DNA of 31,112 nucleotides from Macrostomum lignano (GCA_002269645.1 NIVC01004930.1:1-31112), one strand, 5' to 3'; positions 4,331-25,328 are shown, counted from the first letter of the stretch. The notes: generated by a model not told the origin, from the letters alone. A program made the numbers and translations.

Positions 4331-4737
4331 CGTGGCCTGCTGTCCTTGCCCGGCTCCGCCAGCTGCCCGGCGCCCTGTCGCTGCGCACCACCTACTCGGC
4401 GGCGCTGACCCTGCGAGTGCGCGAAAAGATCGCGGATACCCGTCGCCGATCGCAAGAGGGCGGCGGCGCCAAGCGAATCGACGCCCAGCACCAGAAGGGC
4501 AAGCTGACCGCCCGGGAGCGAATCGAGCTTCTCATGGACCCTGGCAGCTTTCGCGAATACGACGCCTTCGTTGAGCACGACTGCATCGACTTCGGCATGG
4601 AAAAGTCCAAGACCCCGGCCGACAGCGTGGTGACGGGGCACGGCCTCATCCACGGCCGGCCGGCGTTCGTGTTCAGCCAGGACTTCACCGTCTACGGTGG
4701 CAGCCTCTCACTGGCCCACGCCAAGAAGATTTGCAAG
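4300..4737 (+). CDS. PCCB: Propionyl-CoA carboxylase beta chain, exon 1 (mitochondrial presequence plus start of carboxyltransferase domain)
   Basis: [22 protein letters not shown]... is Arg/Ser/Leu-rich and lacks acidic residues. Then [27 protein letters not shown] and [12 protein letters not shown]...KICK match recalled PCCB. Donor AAG|gtctgc, phase 0. Join 4300-4737,5267-5543,6195-6364,7816-8273,8789-9071 = 1626 nt = 541 aa + stop. Confidence 0.93.
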
Positions 4738-4787
4738 GTCTGCTCGCTGAAAAGTTTTCTTCCGGCATCTTTGTTACATTTTATTTG

Positions 4788-5231
4788 TGACGTCATTATT
4801 CATTATGACGTCATTTTTATCTTGGGTTACGTAATCCACCCGTGCAAGCTAAATGGCGTCAAATTTAGAGATTCTTTGTCGAAGTGTCGGACTGTGAATA
4901 ATTTTCAGAGAACTATTTCTTTTAGTTAAATCAGGGGTGGGAAAACTCCAACCTGTGGGCCATATGCGGCGCTATATCCGGCACTCAGGTCCTTGGACAC
5001 TTTAGACTGGCAATCCGCTCTTCTCAGTTATCTCCTCTCCCCTCCTCCCTCTCCTCTTCTCTCCTCTCATCCCATGTAAACTCTCTTATCTTATCTCCTC
5101 TTCTCTCCCCCCCTATTTCCCCCCCCCCTATCTCGTATCTTTGATGACGTCATTGTAGTTCTTCTATCTATGACATCATCTTTGGCATGTTTTTTGTTGG
5201 ATGAAGTCATCGTCGTCTAGTTATGACGTCA
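4788..5231. promoter_or_regulatory. Cluster of CRE-type palindromes (TGACGTCA) in PCCB intron 1
   Basis: Perfect TGACGTCA at 4788, 4806, 5145, 5224; one-mismatch TGACATCA at 5171 and TGAAGTCA at 5202. Function unproven. Confidence 0.35.
4932..4970 (+). mobile_element. Possible hAT-type DNA transposon/MITE 5' terminus fragment
   Basis: CAGGGGTGGGAAAACT...GGGCCATATGCGGC resembles hAT MITE ends (CAGGGGT...AAAC, GGGCCACATGCGGC). I found no matching 3' TIR or TSD. Confidence 0.3.
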
Positions 5232-5266
5232 TCGTGTCTACTAAGTCTCCCCCCATCGCCCCATAG

Positions 5267-5543
5267 GTGATGGACCAGGCCATGGTGGTCGGCGCCCCGG
5301 TCATCGGCCTCAACGACAGCGGCGGCGCCCGCATCCAGGAGGGCGTGGCCAGCCTGGCCGGCTATGCCGACATCTTCGAGCGCAACGTGCTGGCCTCCGG
5401 CGTGGTGCCGCAGATCTCCATGATCATGGGACCCTGCGCCGGCGGCGCCGTGTACTCCCCTGCCCTCACCGACTTCATCTTCATGGTGGAGCAGTCCTCC
5501 TACCTGTTCATCACCGGCCCCGATGTGGTCAAGACTGTTACTG
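5267..5543 (+). CDS. PCCB: PCCB exon 2
   Basis: cccatag|GTG ATG GAC; VMDQA...[14 protein letters not shown]...[17 protein letters not shown]...[12 protein letters not shown]; donor G|gtgagc, phase 1. Confidence 0.95.
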
Positions 5544-5579
5544 GTGAGCCCTGCTGCCCAGCGCCTTCGCCCGGCTCTC

Positions 5580-6090
5580 TGACTCTCCGTCTGACTCTGA
5601 CTTCTCTCTTGCTGACTCTCTGACTCTGATATCCCTCTGTCTGACCCTCAGACTCGGACATCCCTCAACCTGACTCTCTGACATCCTTCTACCCGACTCT
5701 CTGACATCCCTCTACCTGACTCTCTGACATCCCTCTACCTGACTCTCTGACATCCCTCTACCTGATTCTCTGACATCCCTCTACCTGACTCTGACATCCC
5801 TCTACCTGACTCTGACATCCCTCTACCCGACTCTCTGACATCCCTCTATCTGACTCGAACATCCCTCTGACTCTGACATCCCTCTACCTGACTCTGACAT
5901 CCCTCTACCTGACTCTGACATCCCTCTACCTGACTCTGACATCTCTCTATCTGACTCTCTAACATTCTCTAACTGACTCTGACATTCTCCATCTGACTCT
6001 CTAACATTCTCTATCTGACTCTGACATTCTCTATCTGACTCTCTGACATCCTCTATCTGACTCTCTGACATTCTCTATCTGACTCTCTAA
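5580..6090. repeat. Pyrimidine-rich ~23-25-bp minisatellite (TCTGACATCCCTCTACCTGACTC[TC])n in PCCB intron 2
   Basis: Read directly. Confidence 0.9.
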
Positions 6091-6194
6091 CATTTAATCT
6101 GCTCGCAGCAATCTTCACAGTTTATTTATCACAAACTCTGGGCCTTATGGTTTGCGTCTCCACCTCACCGTCGCTTCCTTCCCGCCGCACCCAG

Positions 6195-6364
6195 GCGAGA
6201 ATGTCACCCAGGAGGAGCTGGGCGGCTCCAAGACCCACACCGTCACCTCGGGCGTGGCGCATCGCGCCTTCGAGAACGACGTCGACGCTCTGGCTACCCT
6301 GCGCGAGCTGTACACCTTCTTGCCGCTGTCCAATCGCGACAGGGCCCCCATCCGCGAGTGTCAG
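6195..6364 (+). CDS. PCCB: PCCB exon 3
   Basis: cccag|GC completes Gly; [32 protein letters not shown]...PIRECQ; donor CAG|gtgagt, phase 0. Confidence 0.95.
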
Positions 6365-6419
6365 GTGAGTCCGTTCTCGGAGTTCTCAACCTCTTGATCA
6401 ATTTTCTAGCAGTTTTACA

Positions 6420-7070
6420 CAGTTGTTGACTCGCTGACCCAGTTGTTGGGTCCCCCTGACACAGTTGTTGACTCGCTGACCCAGTTGTTAAGTCCCTGAC
6501 CCAGTTGTTGACTCGCTGACCCAGTTTTCGAGTCCCTGACCCAGTTGTTGACTCGCTGACTCACTGTTTACTCACTGACCCAGTTGTTAAGTCCCTGACC
6601 CAGTTGTTGACTCGCTGACCCAGTTGTTGAGTCCCTGACCCAGTTGTTGACTCGCTGACCCAGTTGTTGAGTTCCTGACCCAGTTGTTTACTCGCTGACC
6701 CAGTTGTTGAGTTCCTGACTCAGTTGTTGACTCGCTGACCCAGTTGTTGAGTTCCTGACCCAGTTGTTGACTCGCTGACCTAGTTGTTGAGTCCCTGACC
6801 CTGTTGTTGACTCGCTGACCCAGTTGTTGAGTTCCTGACCCAGTTGTTGACTCGCTGACCCAGTTGTTGAGTCCCTGACCCAGTTGTTGACTCGCTGACT
6901 CACTCTCACTGTTTACTCACTGACCCAGTCGTTGACTCGCTGACCCAGTTGTTGACTCGCTGACCCAGTTGTTGAGTTCCTGACCCAGTTGTTGACTCGC
7001 TGACCTAGTTGTTGAGTCCCTGACCCAGTTGTTGACTTGCTGACCTAGTTGTTGACTCGCTGACGCGCTG
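6420..7070. repeat. Alternating 20+20-bp minisatellite (CTGACCCAGTTGTTGACTCG / CTGACCCAGTTGTTGAGTCC) in PCCB intron 3
   Basis: Read directly; dimeric 40-bp higher-order period. Confidence 0.92.
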
Positions 7071-7339
7071 ATAAATAATAAATAATAAATATTATAATAA
7101 TAAAATAAATATAAATATTTTTATATTAAAACAACATTTAAACTTGTAGGGTATGGTAAGTGCTTGCAGTTCAAAATTCGCAATTCAAATCCTTTGTGGG
7201 AGGAGCAGACAGCTGATTTTATTTAAATCCACGTATATTAAAATAAATAAATAATGTAATAATTATGATTCGTACTGTGTGTGGGTACATATTTGCAATT
7301 TGATTCGCAAAAATTGCCCTTGACAAATGCATTGGCTTG

Positions 7340-7800
7340 TCTTAATTGACCTATCCCCTGATTCATTGACCCACTCACTTGCTCATTTATTGACCCAACC
7401 ACTGATTCATTGACCCACCCACTGATTCATTCACCCACCCACTGATTCATTGACCCACCGGCACCCACTGATTCATTCACCCACCCACTGATTCATTGAC
7501 CCACCCACTGATTCATTGACCCACCGGCCACTCCCTGATTCATTGACCCACCGGGCACTCCCTGATTTTCATTGACCCACCGGCCACTCCCTAATTCATT
7601 GACCCACCGGCCACTCCCTGATTTTCATTGACCCACCGGCCACTCCCTGATTTTCATTGACCCACCGGCCACTCCCTGATTTTCATTGACCCACCGGCCA
7701 CTCCCTGATTCATTGACCCACCGGCCACTCCCTGATTCATTGACCCACCGGCACCCCTTGATTCATAGACCCACCGGCCACCCCCTGACTCATTGACCCA
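7340..7800. repeat. ~18- to 29-bp minisatellite (CCACTCCCTGATTCATTGACCCACCGG)n ending at the intron 3 acceptor
   Basis: Read directly; the last unit grades into ...gttgacccgcag. Confidence 0.9.
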
Positions 7801-7815
7801 CACGTTGACCCGCAG

Positions 7816-8273
7816 GACTCGCCAGACCGCGTGGTGCCGGCCCTGGACACGGTGGTGCCCCTGGAGACGACCAGCGCCTACGACATGCTCGACGTGATTC
7901 GCGGCATCGTTGATGAAGAGGAGTTCTTTGAAATCATGCCCAAGCACGCCAAGAACATCGTGATCGGCTTCGGCCGGATGCACGGCCAGACGGTTGGTTT
8001 CCTTGGTAACCAGCCCAAGGTGGCCGCCGGCTGCCTGGACATCAACGCGTCCGTTAAGGGCGCCCGGTTTGTCCGCTTCTGCGACGCCTTCAACATCCCG
8101 CTGGTGACGCTGGTTGACGTGCCCGGCTTCCTGCCCGGCACCCAGCAGGAGTTCAATGGCATCATCAAGCACGGCGCCAAGCTGATCTACGCCTACGCCG
8201 AGGCCACCGTGCCGAAAATTACCGTCATCACGCGCAAGGCCTACGGCGGCGCCTACTGCGTTATGAGCTCCAA
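7816..8273 (+). CDS. PCCB: PCCB exon 4
   Basis: ccgcag|GAC TCG; [19 protein letters not shown]...[45 protein letters not shown]...[14 protein letters not shown]; donor AA|gtgagt, phase 2. Confidence 0.96.
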
Positions 8274-8348
8274 GTGAGTTTTGCACGCCTGCTTTTAGTG
8301 TATGTGACTAGCAGACAAGCCCTCCTTTGGGGTTTCTGACGCTTACTC

Positions 8349-8531
8349 TAGCCTAGTGGTTAGAGCGTTGGACTCACAACTGAGTGGTCGGGGGTTCGAT
8401 TCTCGACCCAGTCGGAACAATTTGTGTCCTCAAGCAAGACACTTAACTCTGCATTACGTCAGTTCACCCAGCTGTAAAATGGGTACCAGCTTTAGCTGGG
8501 GTAATTCAGGGTGTGTGGCGACCCCCCCCCC
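8349..8531 (+). mobile_element. tRNA-derived SINE with a CORE-like central domain, in PCCB intron 4
   Basis: A-box TAGCCTAGTGG (8349-8359) and B-box GGTTCGATTCT (8393-8403). 8423-8483 aligns without gaps to the recalled MIR CORE consensus at 43/61 identities by my count. Confidence 0.8.
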
Positions 8532-8788
8532 AGTCCTTGAATTATATTAATTTATGAAAAAAATCCAATCAGCTTGGTATATTTTTGATACACATCGGCA
8601 ATAGAGCCCTCAAAAAGTGTCAATCATCTAGCTATATGCCGTACTGCAAAGTGTTTTTTAGATACATATCGAACATCTTTGCCTAGAGTCTGAAAAAAGG
8701 CTTGTAACATTACAGTATCAAAATCATCTCTCTGTGAAGTATGTTTTCGATACATATCGTCGCAAACTAAACTACGTCTACGTTTCAG

Positions 8789-9071
8789 GCACCTCCGCGG
8801 CGACGTGAACTACGCCTGGCCAAGCGCCGAAATCGCCGTGATGGGCGCCCAGGGTGCCGTTAAAATCATCTTCCGCGGCAAGGACCAGGCTCAGGCCGAG
8901 ACTGACTACGTTGACAAGTTCGCCAACCCGTTCCCGGCCGCTGTCCGCGGCTACGTTGACGATATTGTGCAGCCGCGCTTCACTCGCCAGCTGATCTGCC
9001 GCGACCTGGAGCTGCTGCGCACCAAATCCCAGACCAACCCGTGGCGCAAGCATGGCAACATGCCGCTGTGA
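8789..9071 (+). CDS. PCCB: PCCB exon 5 (terminal)
   Basis: tttcag|G completes Lys; [24 protein letters not shown]...[17 protein letters not shown]...[10 protein letters not shown] matches the PCCB C-terminus. Confidence 0.96.
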
Positions 9072-11099: not shown

Positions 11100-12287
11100 T
11101 AGTTTTATTTTTCCGTAGTGTATTAATTAAGGTCCTGTTTTAGTTAGAATAAGACAGCTGGCAAAGTGTGAACAGAAAAGTTCTCGAATATCGTAACGTT
11201 CATAATTCTGTTGGTTATAGACCAAGAAACTTTTGCACATTCATGATAACTTTAAATTCTTTGGAGTTAAATCTGAGTTAAATATAACAAAAATGCTTTC
11301 TTTTTGGAATATGCACTTGTCAAATACTTTTTTAACGAAATTTAAGTAGCTATTTGATTTAATGAAAGTAAAAAATCATATAGTTAATTTATTATTTCCA
11401 TTGTCAGTGTCAAGATAAAGGTACCAACTTAGTTTTTTCTGTGCATGCGATTTTTTGTATCCTAGTAGCTTTTGCGACTGTTACTTTTTAGATTTCCATA
11501 TATTTATTTTATGCAATAGAGAAATTTAAGGAAAAAGCTATACACAGGTACTTCAAAGTCTTTTTTCTTAGTCTCGATCTGATAATAAAAATCTTGGATT
11601 AAACTGCATATAAATGTATTCTAACAGAGAGATGCTTAAAAATTAATTTACTATAAGTCCTAAACCAGGTAAGCCTTTTTGGCGAGCTGATGTGGCTTTC
11701 AATTGAGGATATTGTAGACTAAAAAAATAATTCGTTTTTTGTCCTAACTTCTACATAGCATCATATTCTTAAGAAAAATGACATGTAAAGTATAGTTTTG
11801 TTTTAGAATCTATTTCTAATTGGCTATATGGCTATATCTATTTGGCTATACTTGTACATTGTACTCTTTGCCTTGAATTGCCTTTTAGAGCAGACAGCTG
11901 GCCCAGAACTTTTCTATAACAAAAATTACTCTGGATTTTTTAATTTTTTTCCTGAAAGTATTTAATATTTATTTTTTATATTTATATTTATATATATCTA
12001 AAATTTTCATTTTATAAATAATAATATATAATATAATATATAAATAATAATAATATAATATATATTATGAAAATTCTCACTCTTTAAAAAAAGTTTTATT
12101 GTTATTAAAATAAATTTGTTTTATTCAAATTTTGCTAAATAATATTTCATTAATTTTGAAGCAAAAATTAAAACAGCTAACAAAAGATCAAAAAAATGAA
12201 CACACAACTTTTAAACAAGTATACAAATTGAAACCTTCAGTAATTTTTTAATTTCTTTTTAAATTTTTTATTGAAATTTTTAGCCTA

Positions 12288-12534
12288 ATGGACCAGTCTT
12301 CACGTCCGGAATTGCCTGTGGATTTCTATTCCGCCCTGCAAGAATCAAAGCAGAGCCTTGACACTGAATTTGAGAACAATACAAATCTGCGGCACCATGT
12401 GCGTCAGCTGGTGCAAGCTTTGAAGTGCAGGACAGATGATGCGGCAGCTGCAAGGCAGCGCATGGCAGCTGCCATTGCTGCTGAGAACATCCTGCCAGAC
12501 TTGAGCAAGCTGTCGATGGCCTGTCTTAGCAAAG
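12288..12534 (+). CDS. ARM-repeat/TIR/SAM-like protein, exon 1
   Basis: ATG 4 nt after TTTTTAG; helical MDQSSRPELPVDFYSALQESK...LSK; donor G|gtgaaa, phase 1. Join 12288-12534,13155-13697,14023-14280,15352-15485,16011-16116,16257-16726 = 1758 nt = 585 aa + stop, all phases consistent. Confidence 0.75.
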
Positions 12535-12669
12535 GTGAAATGGCAGGATTATAATTTATTTTTAGACTCCTTCATTCGCTTGAAGGGGTGTGTATGGCCT
12601 ACAGCAGGACCACCAATAACATCTAGTTTGACACCTGGTCTGGTGCCCCTGTCACTTGATCTGACTCTT

Positions 12670-13050
12670 CTGACACCCTATTTAGCAGTCCTGACACCTG
12701 ATTTAGCAGTCCTGACACCTGATTTAGCAGTCCTGACACCTGATTTAGCAGTCCTGACACCTGATTTAGCAGTCCTGACACCTGATTTAGCAGTCCTGAC
12801 ACCTGATTTAGCATTCCTGACACCTGATTTAGCAGTCCTGACACCTGATTTAGCAGTCCTGACACCTGATTTAGCAGTCCTGACACCTGATTTAGCAGTC
12901 CTGACACCTGATTTAGCATTCCTGACACCTGATTTATCAGTCCTGACACCTGATTTAGCAGTCCTGACACCTGATTTAGCATTCCTGACACCTGATTTAT
13001 CAGTCCTGACACCTGATTTAGTAGTTTTGAAGCCCAATTTAGCATTCCTG
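12670..13050. repeat. 21-bp minisatellite (CCTGACACCTGATTTAGCAGT)n in intron 1
   Basis: Read directly; it generates the spurious LAVLTPD and LNQVSGL ORFs. Confidence 0.95.
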
Positions 13051-13154
13051 ACACACCCGGTCGGTAGTTCTGACATCCTAGTTGTCTCCTGACGCACCCA
13101 ATTTGGCACTCCCGATCCCCCTATAATCTGACAACCTGTGAACCCCAAACGCAG

Positions 13155-13697
13155 CTGGTCAGCAGCAGCTCACCAAAGGCGAGTTCCAGCTGCTGCTGTG
13201 CACCCTGCACCTCTGCCACACCTGCACGGACGCCAGCCCTGAGTTCTCGGCTCATCTGGTCGGCTCGGGTGACGCTCTGCAGCTGCTGAAGTCCCTGCTG
13301 GCCGCGTGGGTGCAGCCACACCTGGAGAAACGGCTTGAGCAGCAGTCGGTCAGAGGCCTCAAAAGCTGCTTGAGCACCGTGTACAACGCGCTGTGGCAGG
13401 GCGAGGCCCGTGAACTCTGCAGCCTGCTGGCACTGAAACAAATCGGCATTGTGGAAGCAGCCAACCAGCTGTTTCAACTGTCTGACAATAAGTACATCGT
13501 CCAGTTCAGCTTCCTCATTCTGGTGTACAGCTGCTCGGATGATGAGGCAGCCAGATTCCTGCAGCCGGGCGACTCCGGCCAGCAGCAGGAGCGGGTCGGG
13601 CGCCAGTTGCGCCAGCTGGTGGCCGGGCTGGGCCGGGCCTGCGCCGCCAAGCACCTGAGAACAGAAGACGGCTTTAGCATGGATGAGCTGCTTGCCT
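13155..13697 (+). CDS. ARM-repeat/TIR/SAM-like protein, exon 2 (ARM-like helical repeats)
   Basis: acgcag|CT completes Ala; CHTCTDASPEFSAHLV, SCLSTVYN, DGFSMDELLA; donor T|gttagc, phase 1. Confidence 0.8.
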
Positions 13698-14022
13698 GTT
13701 AGCGGCGGGTCTCTGTGGAATCTTTGTTGTTGAGTTGCAGACTTTGTAGTTGAGCTTGGACAAGCAATAGACTCTCCGGTGGTGCATAAATATTTGTAGA
13801 AGCTGGGCTCTGTTGGAGTCGAAAAATGAAGACAGTTGATTGAGTGGAAAATTCCGCACATTTATTTACTACTCTACTAATAGCAAAAATACAGGGATAA
13901 AAGCGTTAAATAAAACACGAGTACATAATGCAAGTATTTTCTATATGCTACTAATATAAAATTTTCCAGTGAATTTTCTTAGAAATTAATCTGCACTACA
14001 CGGCCCCACTTTCCCGCCGCAG

Positions 14023-14280
14023 GCGTCCGGCGGTTCAGCCGCCGCCCCGACCACCGCCCGCTGGTGCTCCGCCAGGACTGTCTGGCTGAGCTGCAGCGGC
14101 TGCTGCAGACGGCGGCCGAGCGACCCGCCAGTCAGATCGTTGCCGCCCTCGAAATCGCGCTCTCGCTTTCATTGCACCCGACATGCGTCGACGCAGTCAG
14201 GCGGAGCCTCGGCTCGGAGCTGCAGTCGCTGGTAGTTGAGGGCGGCGGGCGGCTGGCGGACGCTGTCCGGTGCCTCTTGG
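14023..14280 (+). CDS. ARM-repeat/TIR/SAM-like protein, exon 3
   Basis: ccgcag|GC completes Cys; VRRFSRRPDHRPLVLRQDCLAELQRLL...AALEIALSLSL...ADAVRCLL; donor G|gtgagg, phase 1. Confidence 0.75.
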
Positions 14281-14969
14281 GTGAGGATGATGGACAGCTG
14301 CAACCAGGGCGTCGCCATGGACTTTATGGTGGTGGGAAACAGTCGGGAATTCTACATGACTAAATTCCTACATTAATTTGGGAATCGGTGTTGTTGGCAC
14401 TCATTTTGGCGCCGCAGGCACTCATTTTGGCGCGACAGACAGGCACTCATTTTAGAGATAGGGATTAGAGAGGAATAGAGATAGGATTGAGATAGGAAGC
14501 TGTCGGTTTTACAAGAACTATGATTGGGCATTGCCAATTTCTCACAGTTTGAAAAAAATTGCTGTTTTTTCTTTTGCTTTCTACTTAAAGTAGTCTGTCG
14601 CTGATTATTTTAGAATCGCCAGAGTCTGACTCGAAAGAGCAGCCGCGGTGGACAACTGATGCTTTTTCCGGTCCAAATGAAGGTCAGCCATCGCTTTCGC
14701 TTTGTCGAGTCGATTGTTGAATGTTTTTAGATAAGTTGTTTAATCAAGTTTTCTGATACCTGGTATTTTAGAACTCCGAACTTCACAACGCAAAGCAAGG
14801 AGCATAAATGAGAGACAGTCGAATTCTCAGGCATCAGGTGAGAACTGGGAAAGAACTGGGTTTTTTCTTCTCAGAACTTCTCAGAACTGGGTGGGCCCTG
14901 TCTTCGTTTCAACAAGTTAGCGGACTCAAAACGATCTGCTTTAGACTGCGGGGCTCCGTAAAGCGAGGC

Positions 14970-15290
14970 TGTAACTATACTGTAAACGAAGCTGTAGCTT
15001 CTCTACGCGAGGCTGTTGCACTGTAGACAAGGCTGTAACTGCTGTAGCTAAGCGAGGCTGTAACTACTGTAATCGAAGATTTAATTGCTGTAGGCGAGGC
15101 TGTAATTCCTGTAGGCAAGACCGTAACTACTGTAGGTAAGGCTGTAACTACTTTAGGTGAGGCTGTAACTACTGTAGATAAGGCTGTAACTACTGTAGTC
15201 GAGGCTGTAACTACTGTAGACGAGGCTGTAACTACTGTAGATAAGGCTGTAACTACTGTAGTCGAGGCTGTAACTACTGTAGTCGAGGAT
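14970..15290. repeat. 21-bp minisatellite (GAGGCTGTAACTACTGTAGTC-like)
   Basis: Read directly, with variant units. Confidence 0.88.
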
Positions 15291-15351
15291 AGGCTTACTA
15301 TCTGCTGTCACGCACCGATCATAAAAGCCTACCAATTGAATCGATTCCCAG

Positions 15352-15485
15352 GCCAGAAACCCAGCGTTCTCCCATTGGAAAATGGCGCAGCCAGCGCCTA
15401 CCTGGTGCTGAGCTGGTCCAGACAAGATTCCGATGCCGCATTTGCCAGATGGCTGGTCGCTAAGCTGAATGAAAACTGGCATCGG
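15352..15485 (+). CDS. ARM-repeat/TIR/SAM-like protein, exon 4 (TIR betaA-alphaA)
   Basis: ttcccag|GC completes Gly; AYLVLSWSRQDSDAAFARWLVAKLNENWHR; donor CGG|gtgagc, phase 0. Confidence 0.72.
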
Positions 15486-15514
15486 GTGAGCGCAGAGAAA
15501 TCCACATCGTATTG

Positions 15515-15920
15515 AAGCTGTCTAGCCAGCCTGCAGTTGTCCGGGTCTGTCTAGCCAGCCTGCGGTTGTCCGGGTCTGTCTTAGTTAGCTTGTAGCTGTC
15601 CGAGTCTGTCTTAGTTAGCTTACAGCTGTCCGAGTCTGTATTAGTTAGCTTACAGCTGTCCGAGTCGGTCTTAGTTAGCTTACAGCTGTCCGAGTTTGTC
15701 TTAGCTAGCTTTCAGCTGTCCGAGTCTGTCTTAGTTAGCTTACAGCTGTCCGAGTTTGTCTTAGCTAGCTTACAGCTGTCCGAGTCTGTCTTAGTTAGCT
15801 TACAGCTGTCCGAGTTTGTCTTAGCTAGCTTTCAGCTGTCCGAGTTTGTCTTAGCTAGCTTTCAGCTGTCCGAGTCTGTCTTAGCTAGCTTACAGCTGTC
15901 CGAGTCTGTCTAGTCAGCCT
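15515..15920. repeat. 30-bp minisatellite (TTAGTTAGCTTACAGCTGTCCGAGTCTGTC)n
   Basis: Two units per 60-nt line. Confidence 0.95.
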
Positions 15921-16010
15921 ATAACCATTCGCTTGTTTTTGCTCTCCAATTACTTTGTAGCAACGTTTCAAAACAATAGTTCCTTTGGCCTTTTTCAAAT
16001 ATTTCCCCAG

Positions 16011-16116
16011 ACTATCGACTTGAGCACAGACTCAACTGCCGGACTCATCGATGGCTGCCGTGCCGTGATTCTGTGCGTCTCCAAGCCATACGAATTAAAC
16101 AGCCTGTGCGAGTTTG
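16011..16116 (+). CDS. ARM-repeat/TIR/SAM-like protein, exon 5 (TIR betaC-alphaC)
   Basis: ttccccag|ACT; TIDLSTDSTAGLIDGCRAVILCVSKPYELNSLCEF; donor G|gtgagc, phase 1. Confidence 0.82.
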
Positions 16117-16256
16117 GTGAGCTCGGCATCCTTGATAACTTACTTCAATCTGAATTATTATTTTCTCATAAAAAAGAAACAATACGCTAAAAAGCTACTT
16201 GTTAGTAGTTAACTCGCTCACTAAATCGGTAAAAATCTGGAATTTTTAATTTCCAG

Positions 16257-16726
16257 AAGCGCACCGGGCGGAGGTGCTGGAAAAACCGCTGGTGCCTCTG
16301 CTGTGCGGCGAAGGCTACCAACCGGGAAGCTGGCTGAGCCCCATCCTGGCCAGGTACTCAGCTCAGGCCGACCTGCTAATTGACTTCTCTAAACAGAGGG
16401 ACCGCGCCAAGTCATTCAGCACTTTAATCGGTCGCCTTAACGGTCAGCTTGTCGCCACGTGGACAAAGACTGCTGCGCCAGCAGTTTCAGCAGTAGCTGT
16501 CGGTGACTTCAGCGGCTGGAGCTCCGCCGAGGTCGGCAGGTGGCTGTCCGGGCACCAGCTTCCAGCTCAGCGGCTGGGCTACCTGAACGGCCGGCACCTG
16601 GAATTCCTGGTGGAGCTGAAGCGGGAAGCGCCCGAGGCATTTTACAGGATGCTGCGAGAGGACCTACGGCTGGACAACTTCGAGTTGGTGTTTCGCTTCA
16701 CCACTGCGGTGAAGAGCCTCGGCTGA
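16257..16726 (+). CDS. ARM-repeat/TIR/SAM-like protein, exon 6 (end of TIR plus C-terminal SAM-like domain)
   Basis: ttccag|AA completes Glu; EAHRAEVLEKPLVPLLCGEGYQPGSWL...LLIDFS (TIR betaD-betaE); WSSAEVGRWL...YLNGRHL...EAPEAFY (SAM-like). Confidence 0.85.
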
Positions 16727-16739
16727 GAGGGCGCTCGGA

Positions 16740-18040
16740 AATGTAGATGAAGATGGGAAGCTGGGGAAGATGTGACGATGAGGGAGATAAAAGGATGAAA
16801 GAGATGGGAGGATGAGTGAGATGGGAGGATGAGGTAGATGGAAGGATGAAGGAGATGGGAGGATGAGGTAGATGGGAGGATGAGGGAGATGGGAGGATGG
16901 GGGAGATGGGAGGATGAGGGAGATGTGAGAATGAGGGAGATGTGAGAATGAGGGAGATGAGAGGATGAGTGAGATGGGAGGATGAGGGAGATAGGAGGAT
17001 GGGGGAGATGAGAGGATGAGGGAGATGGGAGGATGAGGGAGATGGGAGTATGAGGGAGATAGGAGGATGAGAGAGATGAGAGGATGAGGGAGATGGGAGG
17101 ATGGGGGAAATGAGAGGATGAGTGAGATGAGAGGATGAGAGAGATGAGAGGATGAGGGAGATAGGAGGATGGGGGAGATGAGAGGATGAGGGAGATGGGA
17201 GGATGGGGGAAATGAGAGGATGAGTGAGATGGGAGTATGGTTGAGATGAGAGGATGAGAGAGATGAGAGGATGAGGGAGATGGGAGGATGGGGGAGATGA
17301 GAGGATGGGGGAGATGAGAGGATGAGGGAGATGGGAGGATGGGGAGATGGAGGATGGGGGAGATGAGAGGATGAGGGAGATGGGAGGATGGGGGAGATGG
17401 GAGGATGGTTGAGATGAGAGGATGAGAGAGATGAGAGGATGAGGGAGATAGGAGGATGGGGAGATGAGAGGATGAGGGAGATGGGAGTATGAGGGAGATA
17501 GGAGGATGGTTGAGATGAGAGGATGAGAGAGATGAGAGGATGAGGGAGATGGGAGGATGGGGGAAATGAGAGGATGAGTGAGATGGGAGTATGAGGGAGA
17601 TGTGAGGATGGTTGAGATGAGAGGATGAGAGAGATGAGAGGATGAGGGAGATGGGAGGATGGGGGGATGGGAGTATGAGGGAGATGGGAGGATGGTTGAG
17701 ATGAGAGGATGAGAGAGATGAGAGGATGAGGGAGATAGGAGGATGGGGGAGATGAGAGGATGAGGGAGATGGGAGTATGAGGGAGATGGGAGGATGGTTG
17801 AGATGAGAGGATGAGAGAGATGAGAGGATGAGGGAGATTGGAGGATGGGGGAGATGAGAGTATGAGGGAGATGAGAGGATGAGGTAGATGGGAGGATGAA
17901 GGAGATGGGAGGATGAGGGAGATGTGAGGATGGTTGAGATGAGAGGATGAGGTAGATGGGAGGATGAGGGAGATGGGAGGATGAGGGAGATGGGAGGATG
18001 AAGGAGATGGGAGGATGAGGGAGATGGGAGGATGAGAGAG
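16740..18040. repeat. Purine-rich 17-bp minisatellite (TGGGAGGATGAGGGAGA)n
   Basis: Read directly; about 1.3 kb, starting just after the stop codon. Confidence 0.93.
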
Positions 18041-21084: not shown

Positions 21085-24000
21085 CAGGGCTGATGCCCCG
21101 AGTCCCTCCGATCCCCGAATTCCAAAACTGGGATTCTGATCCCCGTGTCTCGATCGGATCCCCGAATTCCCAGACTGGGATTCTGATCCCCGTGTCCCTC
21201 CGATCACCGAATTCCCAAACTGGATTCTGATTCCCCGAGTCCCTCCGATCCCCGATTTACCAAACTGGGATTCTGATCCCCCTAGTCCCTCCGATCCCCG
21301 AATTCCCAATCTGGGATTCTGATCCCCCTAGTCCCTCCGATCCCCGAATTCCCAAACTGGGATTCTGATCCCCCTAGTCCCTCCGATCCCAGAATTCCCA
21401 AACTGGATTCTGATCCCCGTGTCCCTCCGATCACCGAATTCCCAAACTGGATTCTGATTCCCCGAGTCCCTCCGATCCCCGATTTACCAAACTGGGATTC
21501 TGATCCCCCTAGTCCCTCCGATCCCGAATTCCCAATCTGGGATTCTGATCCCCCTAGTCCCTCCGATCCCCGAACTCCCAAACTGGGATTCTGATCCCCG
21601 TGTCTCGATCGGATCCCCGAATTCCCAAACTGGGATTCTGATACCCGTGTCTCGATCGGATCCCCAAACTCCCAGACTGGGATTCTGATTCCCCGAGTCC
21701 CTCCGATCCCCGATTTCCCAAACTGGGATTCTGATCCCCCTAGTCCCTCCGATCCCAGAATTCCCAAACTGGATTCTGATCCCCGTGTCCCTCCGATCAC
21801 CGAATTCCCAAACTGGGATTCTGATCCCCGTGTCTCGATCGGATCCCCGAACTCCCAGACTGGGATTCTGATTCCCCGAGTCCCTCCGATCCCCGAATTC
21901 CCAATCTGGGATTCTGATCTCCGTGTCTCGATCGGATCCCCGAATTCCCAAACTGGGATTCTGATACCCGTGTCTCGATCGGATCCCGAATTCCCAAACT
22001 GGGATTCTGATACCCGTGTCTCGATCGGATCCCCGAATTCCCAAACTGGGATTCTGATACCCGTGTCTCGATCGGATCCCCGAATTCCCAAACTGGGATT
22101 CCGATCCCCGTGTCTCGATCGGATCCCCGAATTCCGAAACTGGGATTCTGATCCCCGTGTCTCGATCGGATCCCCGAACTCCCAAACTGGGATTCTGATC
22201 CCCGTGTCTCGATCGGATCCCCGAACTCCCAAACTGGGATTCTGATCCCCGTGTCTCGATCGGATCCCCGAATTCCGAAACTGGGATTCTGATCCCCGTG
22301 TCTCGATTGGATCCCCGAACTCCCAGATTGGGATTCTGATTCCCCGAGTCCCTCCGATCCCGAATTCCCAATCTGGGATTCTGATCTCCGTGTCTCGATC
22401 GGATCCCCGAATTCCGAAACTGGGATTCTGATCCCCGTGTCTCGATCGGATCCCCGAATTCCCAAACTGGGATTCTGATCCCCGTGTCTCGATCGGATCC
22501 ACGAATTCCCAAACTGGGATTCTGATACCCGTGTCTCGATCGGATCCCCGAATTCCCAAACTGGGATTCTGATCCCCGTGTCTCGATCGGATCCCCGAAC
22601 TCCCAAACTGGGATTCTGATACCCGTGTCTCGATCGGATCCCCGAATTCCCAAACTGGGATTCTGATACCCGTGTCTCGATCGGATCCCCGAACTCCCAA
22701 ACTGGGATTCTGATCCCCGTGTCTCGATCGGATCCCCGAATTCCCACACTGGAATTCTGATCCCCGTGTCTCGATCGGATCCCCGAACTCCCAAACTGGG
22801 ATTCTGATCCCCGTGTCTCGATCGGATCCCCGAACTCCCAAACTGGGATTCTGATCCCCCTAGTCCCTCCGATCCCAGAATTCCCAAACTGGATTCTGAT
22901 CCCCGTGTCCCTCCGATCACCGAATTCCCAAACTGGATTCTGATTCCCCGAGTCCCTCCGATCCCCGATTTACCAAACTGGGATTCTGATCCCCTAGTCC
23001 CTCCGATCCCCGAATTCCCAATCTGGGATTCTGATCCCCCTAGTCCCTCCGATCCCCGAACTCTCAAACTGGGATTCTGATCCACGTGTCTCGATCGGAT
23101 CCCCGAATTCCCAAACTGGGATTCTGATACCCGTGTCTCGATCGGATCCCCAAACTCCCAGACTGGGATTCTGATTCCCCGAGTCCCTCCGATCCCCGAT
23201 TTCCCAAACTGGGATTCTGATCTCTCTAGTCCCTCCGATCCCCGAATTCCCAAACTGGATTTTGATCCCCCTAGTCCCTCCGATCCTCGAATTCCCAAAC
23301 TGGGATTCTGATCCCCGTGTCTCGATCGGATCCCCGAATTCCGAAACTGGGATTCTGATCCCCGTGTCTCGATCGGATCCCCGAATTCCGAAACTGGGAT
23401 TCTGATTCCCCGAGTCCCTCCGATCCCCGAATTCCCAATCTGGGATTCTGATCTCCGTGTCTCGATCGGATCCCCGAATTCCCAAACTGGGATTCTGATA
23501 CCCGTGTCTCGATCGGATCCCCGAATTCCCAAACTGGGATTCTGATACCCTTGTCTCGATCGGATCCCCGAATTCCCAAACTGGGATTCTGATACCCGTG
23601 TCTCGATCGGATCCCGAATTCCGAAACTGGGATTCTGATCCCCGTGTCTCGATCGGATCCCCGAACTCCCAGACTGGGATTCTGATTCCCCAAGTCCCTC
23701 CGATCCCCGAATTCCCAATCTGGGATTCTGATCTCCGTGTCTCGATCGGATCCCCGAATTCCCAAACTGGGATTCTGATACCCGTGTCTCGATCGGATCC
23801 CCGAATTCCCAAACTGGGATTCTGATACCCGTGTCTCGATCGGATCCCGAATTCCCAAACTGGGATTCTGATACCCGTGTCTCGATCGGATCCCGAATTC
23901 CCAAACTGGGATTCTGATACCCGTGTCTCGATCGGATCCCGAATTCCCAAACTGGGATTCTGATCCCCGTGTCTCGATCGGATCCCGAATTCCGAAACTG

Positions 24001-24628
24001 GGATTCTGATCCCCGTGTCTCGATCGGATCCCCGAATTCCCAAACTGGGATTCTGATCCCCGTGTCTCGATCGGATCCCCGAATTCCGAAACTGGGATTC
24101 TGATCCCCGTGTCTCGATCGGATCCACGAATTCCCAAACTGGGATTCTGATCCCCGTGTCTCGATCGGATCCCCGAACTCCCAAACTGGGATTCTGATTC
24201 CCCGAGTCCCTCCGATCCCCGAATTCCCAAACTGGGATTCTGATCCACGTGTCTCGATCGGATCCCCGAATTCCGAAACTGGGATTCTGATCCCCGTGTC
24301 TCGATCGGATCCCCGAACTCCCAAACTGGGATTCTGATCCCCGTGTCTCGATCGGATCCCCGAACTCCCAAACTGGGATTCTGATCCCCGTGTCTCGATC
24401 GGATCCCCGAACTCCCAAACTGGGATTCTGATCCCCGTGTCTCGATCGGATCCCCGAACTCCGAAACTGGGATTCTGATACCCGTGTCTCGATCGGATCC
24501 CCGAATTCCGAAACTGGGATTCTGATCCCCGTGTCTCGATCGGATCCCCGAACTCCCAAACTGGGATTCTGATCCCCGTGTCTCGATCGGATCCCCGAAC
24601 TCCCAAACTGGGATTCTGATTCCCCGAG
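21085..24628. repeat. 3.5-kb intronic composite satellite of 47-bp type A (TGGGATTCTGATCCCCGTGTCTCGATCGGATCCCCGAATTCCCAAAC) and ~45-46-bp type B (...GAGTCCCTCCGATCCCC...) units
   Basis: Read directly; higher-order block duplication 21365-21755 vs 22850-23240. Confidence 0.95.
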
Positions 24629-24670
24629 TTAAGCGGGGAAGCACCGCAGACGGTGCTGCCCAGTGTTGAC

Positions 24671-25005
24671 CTGAGCTTCTCGTCCAGGTCGAATCTCTGG
24701 TCCAGGATGAAGCGCAGCAAATCGGTCAGGGACTCCTTCTCCCCGCCAGTCATGTACAGGTCGCTGGCAGGGTAGGCCAGCACGTTCAGCCGGTTGCTGC
24801 GCATGATTTTGCCCTTGACGAAGTAGAGCTTCTGGCGCAGGATGGTGAGCTTGTTGACGCCCTCGTTGAGCATGAGCAGCTGCGGCTCGCCCAGATTGCT
24901 GGCGTAGTGAACAGCAATGCACTCGCCGGCTGAGTACACCTGCGAGATCTTGGCATCCAGCTCGGCCAGCTGCTGCATCAAATCCGAGCTGAATCCCGTT
25001 GACAT
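24671..25005 (-). CDS. Degenerate EF-hand protein, first exon (or an internal exon starting at 25027 if spliced to the zinc-finger gene)
   Basis: MSTGFSSDLMQQLAELDAKISQVYSAGEC...FILDQRFDLDEKL with strong C/G codon bias; acceptor ccacag at 25028; donor AG|gtcaac, phase 2. Confidence 0.72.
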
Positions 25006-25328
25006 CTGAGCTGTTGAGCTGCCCAATCTGTGGCAGTCTTGAATAGGAATTGCCTGGCTTGTCAGCTAAAGTTTTGCACTGCTTTTACATCTGTAGCCGT
25101 TTCTTTAATTTAAACTGGGTCCGAATGCAGAGCTGCTATTTTAGGCCATAGACATACTCGATGCCGATCGACTATTCGATGTTGACTACCCCTGACTGTA
25201 GCAAGGGATGCTACTCAGACCAGAGGATGTTACTCAGGGAGCAGTTTTATTGGTGCGGTGCATAGTGGGGTTTAAAGAACAAAAAGAAAGGGGTTCACCA
25301 TGGTCTCAGAGGGCATTCGGCGCCATGC

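Follow-up and report, generated by a model that had tools for sequence, protein, structure and literature searches.

A diverged ARM-TIR-SAM protein gene of the flatworm Macrostomum lignano and the uncharacterised family to which it belongs

We analysed a 31,112-nucleotide (nt) stretch of the genome of the flatworm Macrostomum lignano (GCA_002269645.1, NIVC01004930.1:1-31112; hereafter the window) and found that BOX15_Mlig004768g1, at window positions 12288-16726 on the + strand, is an intact, transcribed gene of eight exons. Its product (PAA46322.1; UniProt A0A267DCL6, where it is named 'TIR domain-containing protein') is a cytosolic protein of 630 amino acids (aa) that comprises an armadillo-repeat (ARM) region at residues ~10-350, a disordered linker of ~55 residues, a TIR domain at ~410-541 and one C-terminal SAM-fold domain at ~560-629. 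All three domains are real and stand in that order. It is a much diverged paralogue, known to date only from Macrostomum, within a large family that extends from cnidarians to basal vertebrates, and its profile scores mark it as a mosaic, with a family-typical SAM domain and with ARM and TIR domains near the bottom of the family. Taken as a whole, the evidence leans towards a TIR protein that is assembled through its SAM domain and whose catalysis is uncertain.

Gene model and domain architecture

The reading frame is carried by GC-rich exons and interrupted by introns full of 21-30 bp tandem repeats. It opens with an ATG at 12288, closes with a TGA at 16724-16726, and has GT-AG at every splice site. 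The eight-exon model matches the deposited PAA46322.1 residue for residue and consists of the following exons:

12288-12534, + strand: exon 1, with the start codon and the N-terminal helices of the ARM-repeat region; GT donor at 12535; model identical to PAA46322.1
13155-13697, + strand: exon 2, core of the ARM repeats; the family N-terminal profile covers residues 88-317, and AlphaFold2 gives helical repeats with confidence (pLDDT, predicted local distance difference test) mostly >90
14023-14280, + strand: exon 3, final ARM repeats, from the family profile, AlphaFold2 and the deposited model
14614-14682, + strand: exon 4, 69 nt of disordered linker (ag|AATCGC...ATGAAG|gt), in phase; in all deposited models and paralogue loci
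14772-14837, + strand: exon 5, 66 nt of disordered linker (ag|AACTCC...CATCAG|gt), in phase; in deposited models and paralogue loci
15352-15485, + strand: exon 6, TIR betaA-alphaA (AYLVLSW...), the divergent N-terminal third of the TIR; within the TIR_2 match at 414-531; pLDDT 59-80
16011-16116, + strand: exon 7, TIR betaB to alphaC; its last base, G, is the first base of the Glu475 codon
16257-16726, + strand: exon 8, opening with the AA that completes Glu475; TIR betaD-alphaE, a short linker and the SAM-like domain at ~560-629; stop at 16724-16726

A sequence-only reading of the same stretch had joined six exons (12288-12534, 13155-13697, 14023-14280, 15352-15485, 16011-16116 and 16257-16726) into a protein of 585 aa. 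All six stand, are in phase and give exactly that length; the reading had overlooked the two small linker exons (14614-14682 and 14772-14837), which are kept by all five of the other deposited models that span the linker. Because these two exons lie upstream, in the 14280-15352 interval, the intron that splits the Glu codon of the C-x-x-E motif (G|AA, between 16116 and 16257) is intron 7, and not intron 5 as had been counted. The 45 added residues leave the domain reading unchanged, since they lie in the disordered linker between ARM and TIR, and every motif quoted from the shorter translation (YLVLSW, RAVILCVS, KPLVPL, GSWL, LLIDFS, WSSAEVGRWL...LNGRHL and NSLCEFEAH) is found in the translation.

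The annotation of the M. lignano assembly in GenBank derives from a genome-guided assembly of RNA-sequencing transcripts (PMC5730564), and the eight-exon structure therefore rests on transcripts. The same structure recurs in three other genomic copies, and 272 relatives (E <= 1e-3) came out of an exhaustive HMMER search, so the gene is not a chance product. We considered a gene-prediction artefact and rejected it for BOX15_Mlig004768g1.

Among the Pfam models that the sequence-only reading had named as a check (TIR_2, Arm and SAM), TIR_2 matched, over residues 414-531, with a sub-threshold 26.2 bits in the full protein and 29.6 bits in the isolated domain, against a cut-off of 28. The Arm and SAM models found no match in the full protein, a Pfam scan of the C-terminal 84 aa alone found none, and phmmer found none for the protein among PDB sequences. 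The SAM call for this protein comes from a family profile and AlphaFold2, and the ARM call from a family profile and Foldseek. With leave-one-out family hidden Markov models (HMMs), the ARM module scored 66.8 bits (E = 1.8e-20) over residues 88-317, and the C-terminal module scored 74.5 bits against the family SAM HMM, with a match that stops one residue short of the C-terminus.

AlphaFold2 was uninformative from the single sequence (pLDDT 38) and reached a pLDDT of 81.5 and a predicted template-modelling score (pTM) of 0.75 with a 40-sequence family alignment. The latter model has stacked helices at residues 11-349, disorder at 366-408 (pLDDT <50), a canonical five-strand alpha/beta TIR with E475 in the alphaC helix (470-481), and SAM helices at 564-573, 586-598, 600-609 and 616-629 (pLDDT 91-96). 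Foldseek was queried with the whole model only, so that its list was filled by ARM matches: designed armadillo proteins, the ARM domain of APC (target-normalised template-modelling (TM) score 0.59), beta-catenin, importin-alpha and Vac8. When searched against solved structures, a profile of the family C-terminus (80 segments) returned only SAM/PNT chains (84 matches at E <= 10), among them liprin-beta1 (4.7e-10), ETV6, the SMS1 SAM (5.5e-7, over 75 of 83 positions), SHANK2 and the SARM1 SAM (1e-4), and the full-family ARM profile returned Vac8 (1.5e-27) followed by ARMC4/ODAD2, beta-catenin and APC. Together, family profiles, the TIR_2 score, AlphaFold2 and Foldseek bear out the ARM, TIR and SAM domains in the order first proposed; the structural check suggested at that time gave helical ARM repeats, a five-strand TIR and a helical SAM bundle, with ARM proteins as the Foldseek matches.

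The family and the place of this copy in it

Most of the 272 relatives are 600-850 aa long and share the same layout. Seeded with an amphioxus member, a search gathered 603 proteins (E <= 1e-20), whose hosts are corals, molluscs, a brachiopod, echinoderms, hemichordates, amphioxus, tunicates, lampreys, gar, eel and lungfish. All of these are named 'uncharacterized' or 'hypothetical', and their precomputed Pfam lists contain Arm-type and TIR domains, SAM being absent. Nonetheless, all three modules occur in 245 of 289 fetched proteins that match a TIR, and in the fetched relatives the C-terminal module ends at a median of two residues before the end of the protein. A Pfam scan of 40 relatives found TIR_2 in all 40, Arm in 23 and ARM_ARMC5 in 20; its SAM matches were weak (SAM_3 in four, SAM_2 in two, SAM_1 in one). 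The C-terminal SAM pattern of the family, which spans ~70 residues (W..V..WL ... G..L.FL ... APEFFY), is present in the M. lignano protein. These profile comparisons indicate that the family is large, catalogued and uncharacterised, and that its C-terminal SAM domain is cryptic and has been overlooked by Pfam-based annotation. The statement in the sequence-only reading that ARM-TIR-SAM proteins occur, poorly characterised, in invertebrates was right as to their wide occurrence and lack of characterisation and too narrow as to their hosts, which also include lamprey, gar, eel and lungfish.

In the survey passages that concern them, studies of invertebrate immunomes call such proteins 'ARM-TIR' (Aplysia) or place them within 'ecTIR-DC' classes, with an adaptor role that is only guessed. 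The 'ecTIR-DC' families reportedly go back to Gerdol et al. 2017, to whom papers that cite them give credit. Members from the basal vertebrates Petromyzon, Lampetra, Lepisosteus, Anguilla and Protopterus contradict the statement, as it appears in those passages, that such families are absent from vertebrates. In the cluster tables of a recent preprint (Hurieva et al. 2026, 10.64898/2026.04.20.719644), as far as they concern TIR cluster A0A0B7AZE4_1, two canonical M. lignano paralogues are grouped with Chlamydomonas, Gonium, amphioxus, gar and tunicate proteins; a catalytic Glu is predicted for the cluster, and a TPR-clan (ARM) domain is the only extra domain listed. The SAM tail is absent from the domain column in the rows examined. 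By the same tabulated clustering, the TIR type of the family is also found in the green algae Chlamydomonas and Gonium.

The alphaC Glu is kept in 283 of 285 aligned family members and the Cys three residues upstream in 278. Against solved TIR domains, the family TIR profile scored best with Cat1 (2.3e-9), followed by RPS4 (3.7e-5), TIR-1 (7e-4), MyD88 (8e-4) and human SARM1 (2e-3); the nearest solved TIR by sequence is thus bacterial Cat1, not SARM1. An N-myristoylation-type start, MGxxxS/T, is frequent and not universal (135 of 225 full-length members) and suggests membrane anchoring of the proteins that carry it. The protein studied here starts with MDQSSR and lacks this motif. M. lignano itself has at least three other, canonical paralogue groups (P0009, P0010 and P0019); named among its SAM-bearing paralogues are Mlig009876 and Mlig002835, both canonical, and A0A1I8H3D3. 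The paralogue count proposed earlier as a check thus gave four genomic copies of this gene in addition to these canonical groups.

To place this copy within the family, we ranked its modules by their leave-one-out HMM bit scores:

SAM: 74.5 bits in this protein, family median 74.6, rank 81 of 159
ARM: 66.8 bits in this protein, family median 205, rank 124 of 146
TIR: 47 bits in this protein, family median 197, rank 173 of 177

The canonical M. lignano paralogues have TIR scores of 177-205 bits. In this protein C472 and E475 occupy invariant family columns, and the near-invariant TIR motifs GHxMISY, VWMD, GSTLxAMAxAVE, NCRxEAEYA and PDGWLG are not preserved; they are replaced, in order, by AYLVLSW, (N)WHRTID, DSTAGLIDGC, LCEFEAHRA and PGSWLS. 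The BB-loop/alphaB segment is four residues shorter than in the family, with a gap that two alignments place differently and with the lowest confidence of the model (pLDDT 59-62). The missing motifs are the mark of an outlier and not of non-membership. Apart from self-matches, the closest relative has ~31% identity, and protein databases yielded no intermediate-identity orthologue; a word-indexed homologue search, run with the protein and then with the family alignment, returned M. lignano copies only.

NAD+ chemistry, sequence constraint and competing explanations

In alignments, E475 (LCEFE) falls on SARM1 E642 and on the Glu of experimentally active animal TIRs, and in the family-profile alignment its column holds the catalytic Glu residues of Cat1, RPS4 and C. 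elegans TIR-1. The alphaC Glu is thus retained, as the sequence-only reading had held. Because E475 and C472, three residues upstream, are both kept, the TIR of this protein probably still binds NAD+, and it may cleave or cyclise it. The activity may also be weak, altered or lost, given the replaced near-invariant residues and the shorter BB-loop/alphaB segment. Enzymatic activity of animal TIRs outside SARM1 is only now emerging, according to the sections of the preprint that describe it (Hurieva et al. 2026, 10.64898/2026.04.20.719644); its tabulated assays include TIRs of neighbouring clusters, from oyster, Latimeria, herring and rotifer, that made cyclic ADP-ribose (cADPR) or depleted NAD+.

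The explanation that we favour, as probable on balance, is a SAM-assembled TIR protein of uncertain catalysis. The SAM tail, the sole module at family-typical conservation, would drive self-assembly or co-assembly with canonical paralogues, and this assembly would bring TIR domains together. Clustered in this way, the TIR may process NAD+ via E475, though its activity could be weak or its product another one, and the ARM domain would be the likely regulatory or partner-binding part.

Several observations weigh against this explanation. SAM oligomerisation and ARM regulation are carried over to this protein by analogy alone. The family HMM aligns only its positions 47-137 to the TIR, which correspond to the C-terminal two-thirds; the N-terminal third, whose divergence had already been noticed in the sequence-only reading, falls outside that alignment and has a pLDDT of 59-80 in the model. 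In Table S4 of the preprint (10.64898/2026.04.20.719644), four core-cluster TIRs assayed in isolation in E. coli (from Chlamydomonas, Branchiostoma, Lepisosteus and Phallusia) neither produced cADPR isomers nor depleted NAD+, and conservation of the Glu is not always matched by TIR activity (PMC7075850). Two further points come from the copies of the gene. The assembly contains four, namely the window and the loci L001, L002 and L003, a number that is expected because the M. lignano genome is partly polyploid. L002 and L003 hardly differ from the window copy, and L001 differs from it at 26 of 1893 coding bases (1.37%, vs 2.9% in introns). The latter pair shows 19 non-synonymous and 6 synonymous codon differences, with a ratio of non-synonymous to synonymous differences per site (pN/pS) of ~1.0, which fits relaxed constraint, although 25 codon differences, from L001 as the only diverged copy, cannot separate a ratio of 0.4 from one of 2 and are too few for a claim of selection. 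By region, the non-synonymous to synonymous counts are 13:3 in ARM and 2:2 in TIR plus C-terminus. For the same reasons, we rejected dN/dS, the corresponding ratio of substitution rates, as a basis for a selection claim. In L003 (L003:6969-7437, NIVC01002690.1), exon 8 is shorter by one nucleotide (GG to G in ...AACGGTCAG...) at the equivalent of window position ~16440; the resulting frameshift yields the 553-aa PAA55904.1, without the SAM domain, and reflects either pseudogenisation of that copy or an indel in the long-read assembly.

Instead of a SAM-assembled protein with uncertain catalysis, the gene could, along the lines of the sequence-only reading, encode an autoinhibited NADase or cADPR synthase of flatworm immunity or cell death, in which a ligand-sensing ARM domain releases the TIR, a SAM oligomer builds composite sites and E475 is catalytic. 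We regard this as possible rather than probable. E475 and C472 have survived amid heavy divergence at other positions, the near-universal presence of the Glu in the family argues for selection for catalysis at that level, the domain set parallels that of SARM1, and the preprint tabulates as active neighbouring clusters that share GHxMxSY...C-x-x-E...GWL (cADPR from oyster A0A8W8J0Z4, NAD+ loss with Latimeria H2ZXV5). However, the inactivity tabulated for the four isolated core-cluster TIRs speaks against it, as do the shortened BB-loop/alphaB segment and the replacement of near-invariant positions (WMD, GSTLxAMAxAVE, the G of GWLG, and the R and Y of CRxEAEY), and the ARM ligand pocket and ARM-TIR lock that it invokes are purely putative. 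An equally tentative alternative is a non-catalytic modulator: its SAM domain would co-assemble with canonical paralogues, and its degenerate TIR and ARM domains would cap, dilute or redirect the assembly, as a dominant-negative or decoy subunit. The mosaic conservation, with SAM at rank 81/159 against TIR at 173/177 and ARM at 124/146, would suit such a role, the canonical paralogues share the same genome, and the absent MGxxxS/T start suggests a different localisation. A pure decoy, however, needs neither the Glu nor the Cys three residues before it, and co-assembly between the SAM domains of different paralogues is purely hypothetical. The protein may also be a scaffold, as the sequence-only reading had allowed.

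We consider it improbable that the gene is a decaying duplicate, which would be transcribed yet serve no maintained function and would drift under relaxed constraint in a genome of recent polyploidy. The pN/pS of ~1.0 between the two diverged copies, the excess of non-synonymous differences in ARM (13 against 3), the deletion that truncates one copy before SAM, and the failure to find an intermediate-identity orthologue in protein databases would all fit decay. Yet at ~31% identity to the nearest paralogue the eight-exon frame and canonical splice sites are intact in three of four copies, SAM scores at the full family level and the invariant TIR core residues are kept, a combination that requires long-term purifying selection. 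Moreover, exon divergence is half that of introns (1.37% vs 2.9%), the 25 substitutions cannot tell a ratio of 0.4 from one of 2, and the frameshift may be a long-read assembly error. Least credible, and in our view very improbable, is a SARM1 orthologue, a domain-shuffled descendant of SARM1 or a classical adaptor of the Toll pathway. The three fold types are common to SARM1 and this protein, the SAM profile matches the SARM1 SAM at 1e-4, and Foldseek lists full-length SARM1 at E ~1e-4; that match is local only, with ~12% identity, TM-scores of 0.22-0.29 and a root-mean-square deviation (rmsd) >17 Å, mostly ~25 Å. The domain order is different, there is a single SAM, the TIR profile places SARM1 (2e-3) after Cat1, RPS4, TIR-1 and MyD88, and the ARM domain is of the Vac8/beta-catenin type. 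SARM1 orthology was rejected on the ARM-TIR-SAM order, the one SAM and a TIR that falls outside the SARM1 clade by profile ranking, which is not a phylogeny. Toll-like receptors are absent from flatworms, M. lignano included (PMC8609888), so a role as an adaptor for such receptors is unlikely, and it was likewise rejected.

Genomic surroundings and comparison with known systems

Other features of the window, outside the exons of BOX15_Mlig004768g1, are the following:

1103-1522, + strand: upstream neighbour, a single-exon KRTCAP2 homologue (Pfam Keratin_assoc, 5.7e-49)
~4500-9071, + strand: upstream neighbour, a multi-exon carboxyltransferase (Carboxyl_trans, 6e-71; propionyl-CoA carboxylase beta-like)
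12282-12283, + strand: AG splice acceptor on the 5' side of the ATG, 4 nt from it, which the fused model P0002 uses; it may serve a spliced leader or a polycistronic transcript
12670-13054, 14964-15288, 15534-15918 and 16751-18040: arrays of 17-30 bp tandem repeats, in introns 1, 5 and 6 and the 3' flank
21110-24626: 3.5-kb array of a 47-bp tandem repeat (~76 copies, 90% matches), with a spurious 1180-aa open reading frame (ORF) on the minus strand
~24650-25026, minus strand: 5' end of that ORF, a candidate for the genuine first exon of a gene without a Pfam match

The arrays of 17-30 bp repeats vary in length between copies (514 vs 641 bp in intron 5 and 525 vs 677 bp in intron 6) and produce long spurious ORFs on both strands. 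Since both neighbours, KRTCAP2 and the carboxyltransferase, are housekeeping genes, the surroundings are not an immune gene cluster. The same carboxyltransferase precedes the L001 paralogue, which points to a segmental or whole-genome duplication. In P0002 (A0A1I8IYH0), an older UniProt model, the carboxyltransferase gene upstream and BOX15_Mlig004768g1 are joined into one by a canonical GT-AG intron that runs from a donor in the carboxyltransferase 3' untranslated region (GC|gt, 9111/9112) to the AG acceptor at 12282-12283. Polycistronic units and spliced-leader trans-splicing are common in M. lignano, and the fusion intron suggests a polycistronic transcriptional unit, a spliced-leader acceptor, or both.

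This copy is atypical and, alone, a modest addition to the catalogue: the gene was already annotated and the family already catalogued. The more useful by-product is the cryptic C-terminal SAM domain found across the family. The family is large, old and uncharacterised, and the Glu is present in 99% of its aligned members, yet isolated TIRs have been negative. The SAM domain directly after the TIR offers a testable reason for this inactivity, namely that the constructs were without the assembly module. RNA interference and transgenesis are established in M. lignano, and with these tools and no Toll-like receptors the animal is a clean system for studying such proteins.

Compared with its own ARM-TIR family (cluster A0A0B7AZE4_1), the protein has the armadillo repeats, the TIR_2-type TIR with the C-x-x-E Glu and the C-terminal SAM-like domain of ~70 residues, and it differs as an outlier in TIR (47 vs 197 bits) and ARM (67 vs 205) and in having no MGxxxS/T. 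With Cat1 (CRISPR-associated TIR 1) the family shares the TIR_2-like pattern S..Y..S.xC..E and an aligned Glu (E = 2.3e-9); Cat1, however, is bacterial and has neither ARM nor SAM, and the match is to the family profile rather than specifically to this divergent copy. The animal TIRs outside the Toll-like receptors that make cADPR or deplete NAD+ according to the preprint's tables (oyster A0A8W8J0Z4, Latimeria H2ZXV5, Clupea A0A6P8EVF3 and Adineta A0A814VN55) can be aligned over the whole TIR and share the S-Y after betaA, the C-x-x-E and the WL motifs, but they belong to other clusters, and in the same tables the four tested members of the canonical-paralogue cluster are inactive.

SARM1, dSarm and TIR-1 are ARM-SAM-SAM-TIR NAD+ hydrolases that have the same three fold types and an alphaC Glu, E642 in SARM1, aligned to the one found here. 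By analogy, the logic of a regulatory ARM, an oligomerising SAM and an effector TIR would plausibly be shared as well. In SARM1, however, tandem SAMs precede the TIR, whereas here the order is ARM-TIR-SAM with a single SAM; by profile scores only, the TIR of the family lies outside the SARM1 clade and its ARM is nearer Vac8 and beta-catenin, and an allosteric site for nicotinamide mononucleotide (NMN) or NAD+ and an octameric ring would be purely hypothetical in this protein. The relationship first proposed, a SARM1-like protein in permuted order, does not hold; by these profile comparisons, the family has combined these three folds independently and is not a permuted SARM1. A bolder proposal is that the ARM-TIR family, with its cryptic SAM domain and near-universal Glu, forms a second, SARM1-independent animal system of SAM-assembled TIR enzymes that reaches from cnidarians to lungfish, in which the flatworm copy, with its canonical SAM and remodelled sensor and effector, would be a hetero-oligomerising regulator or a product-switched enzyme. 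We think this rather unlikely; if true, such a system would operate in an animal without any Toll-like receptors.

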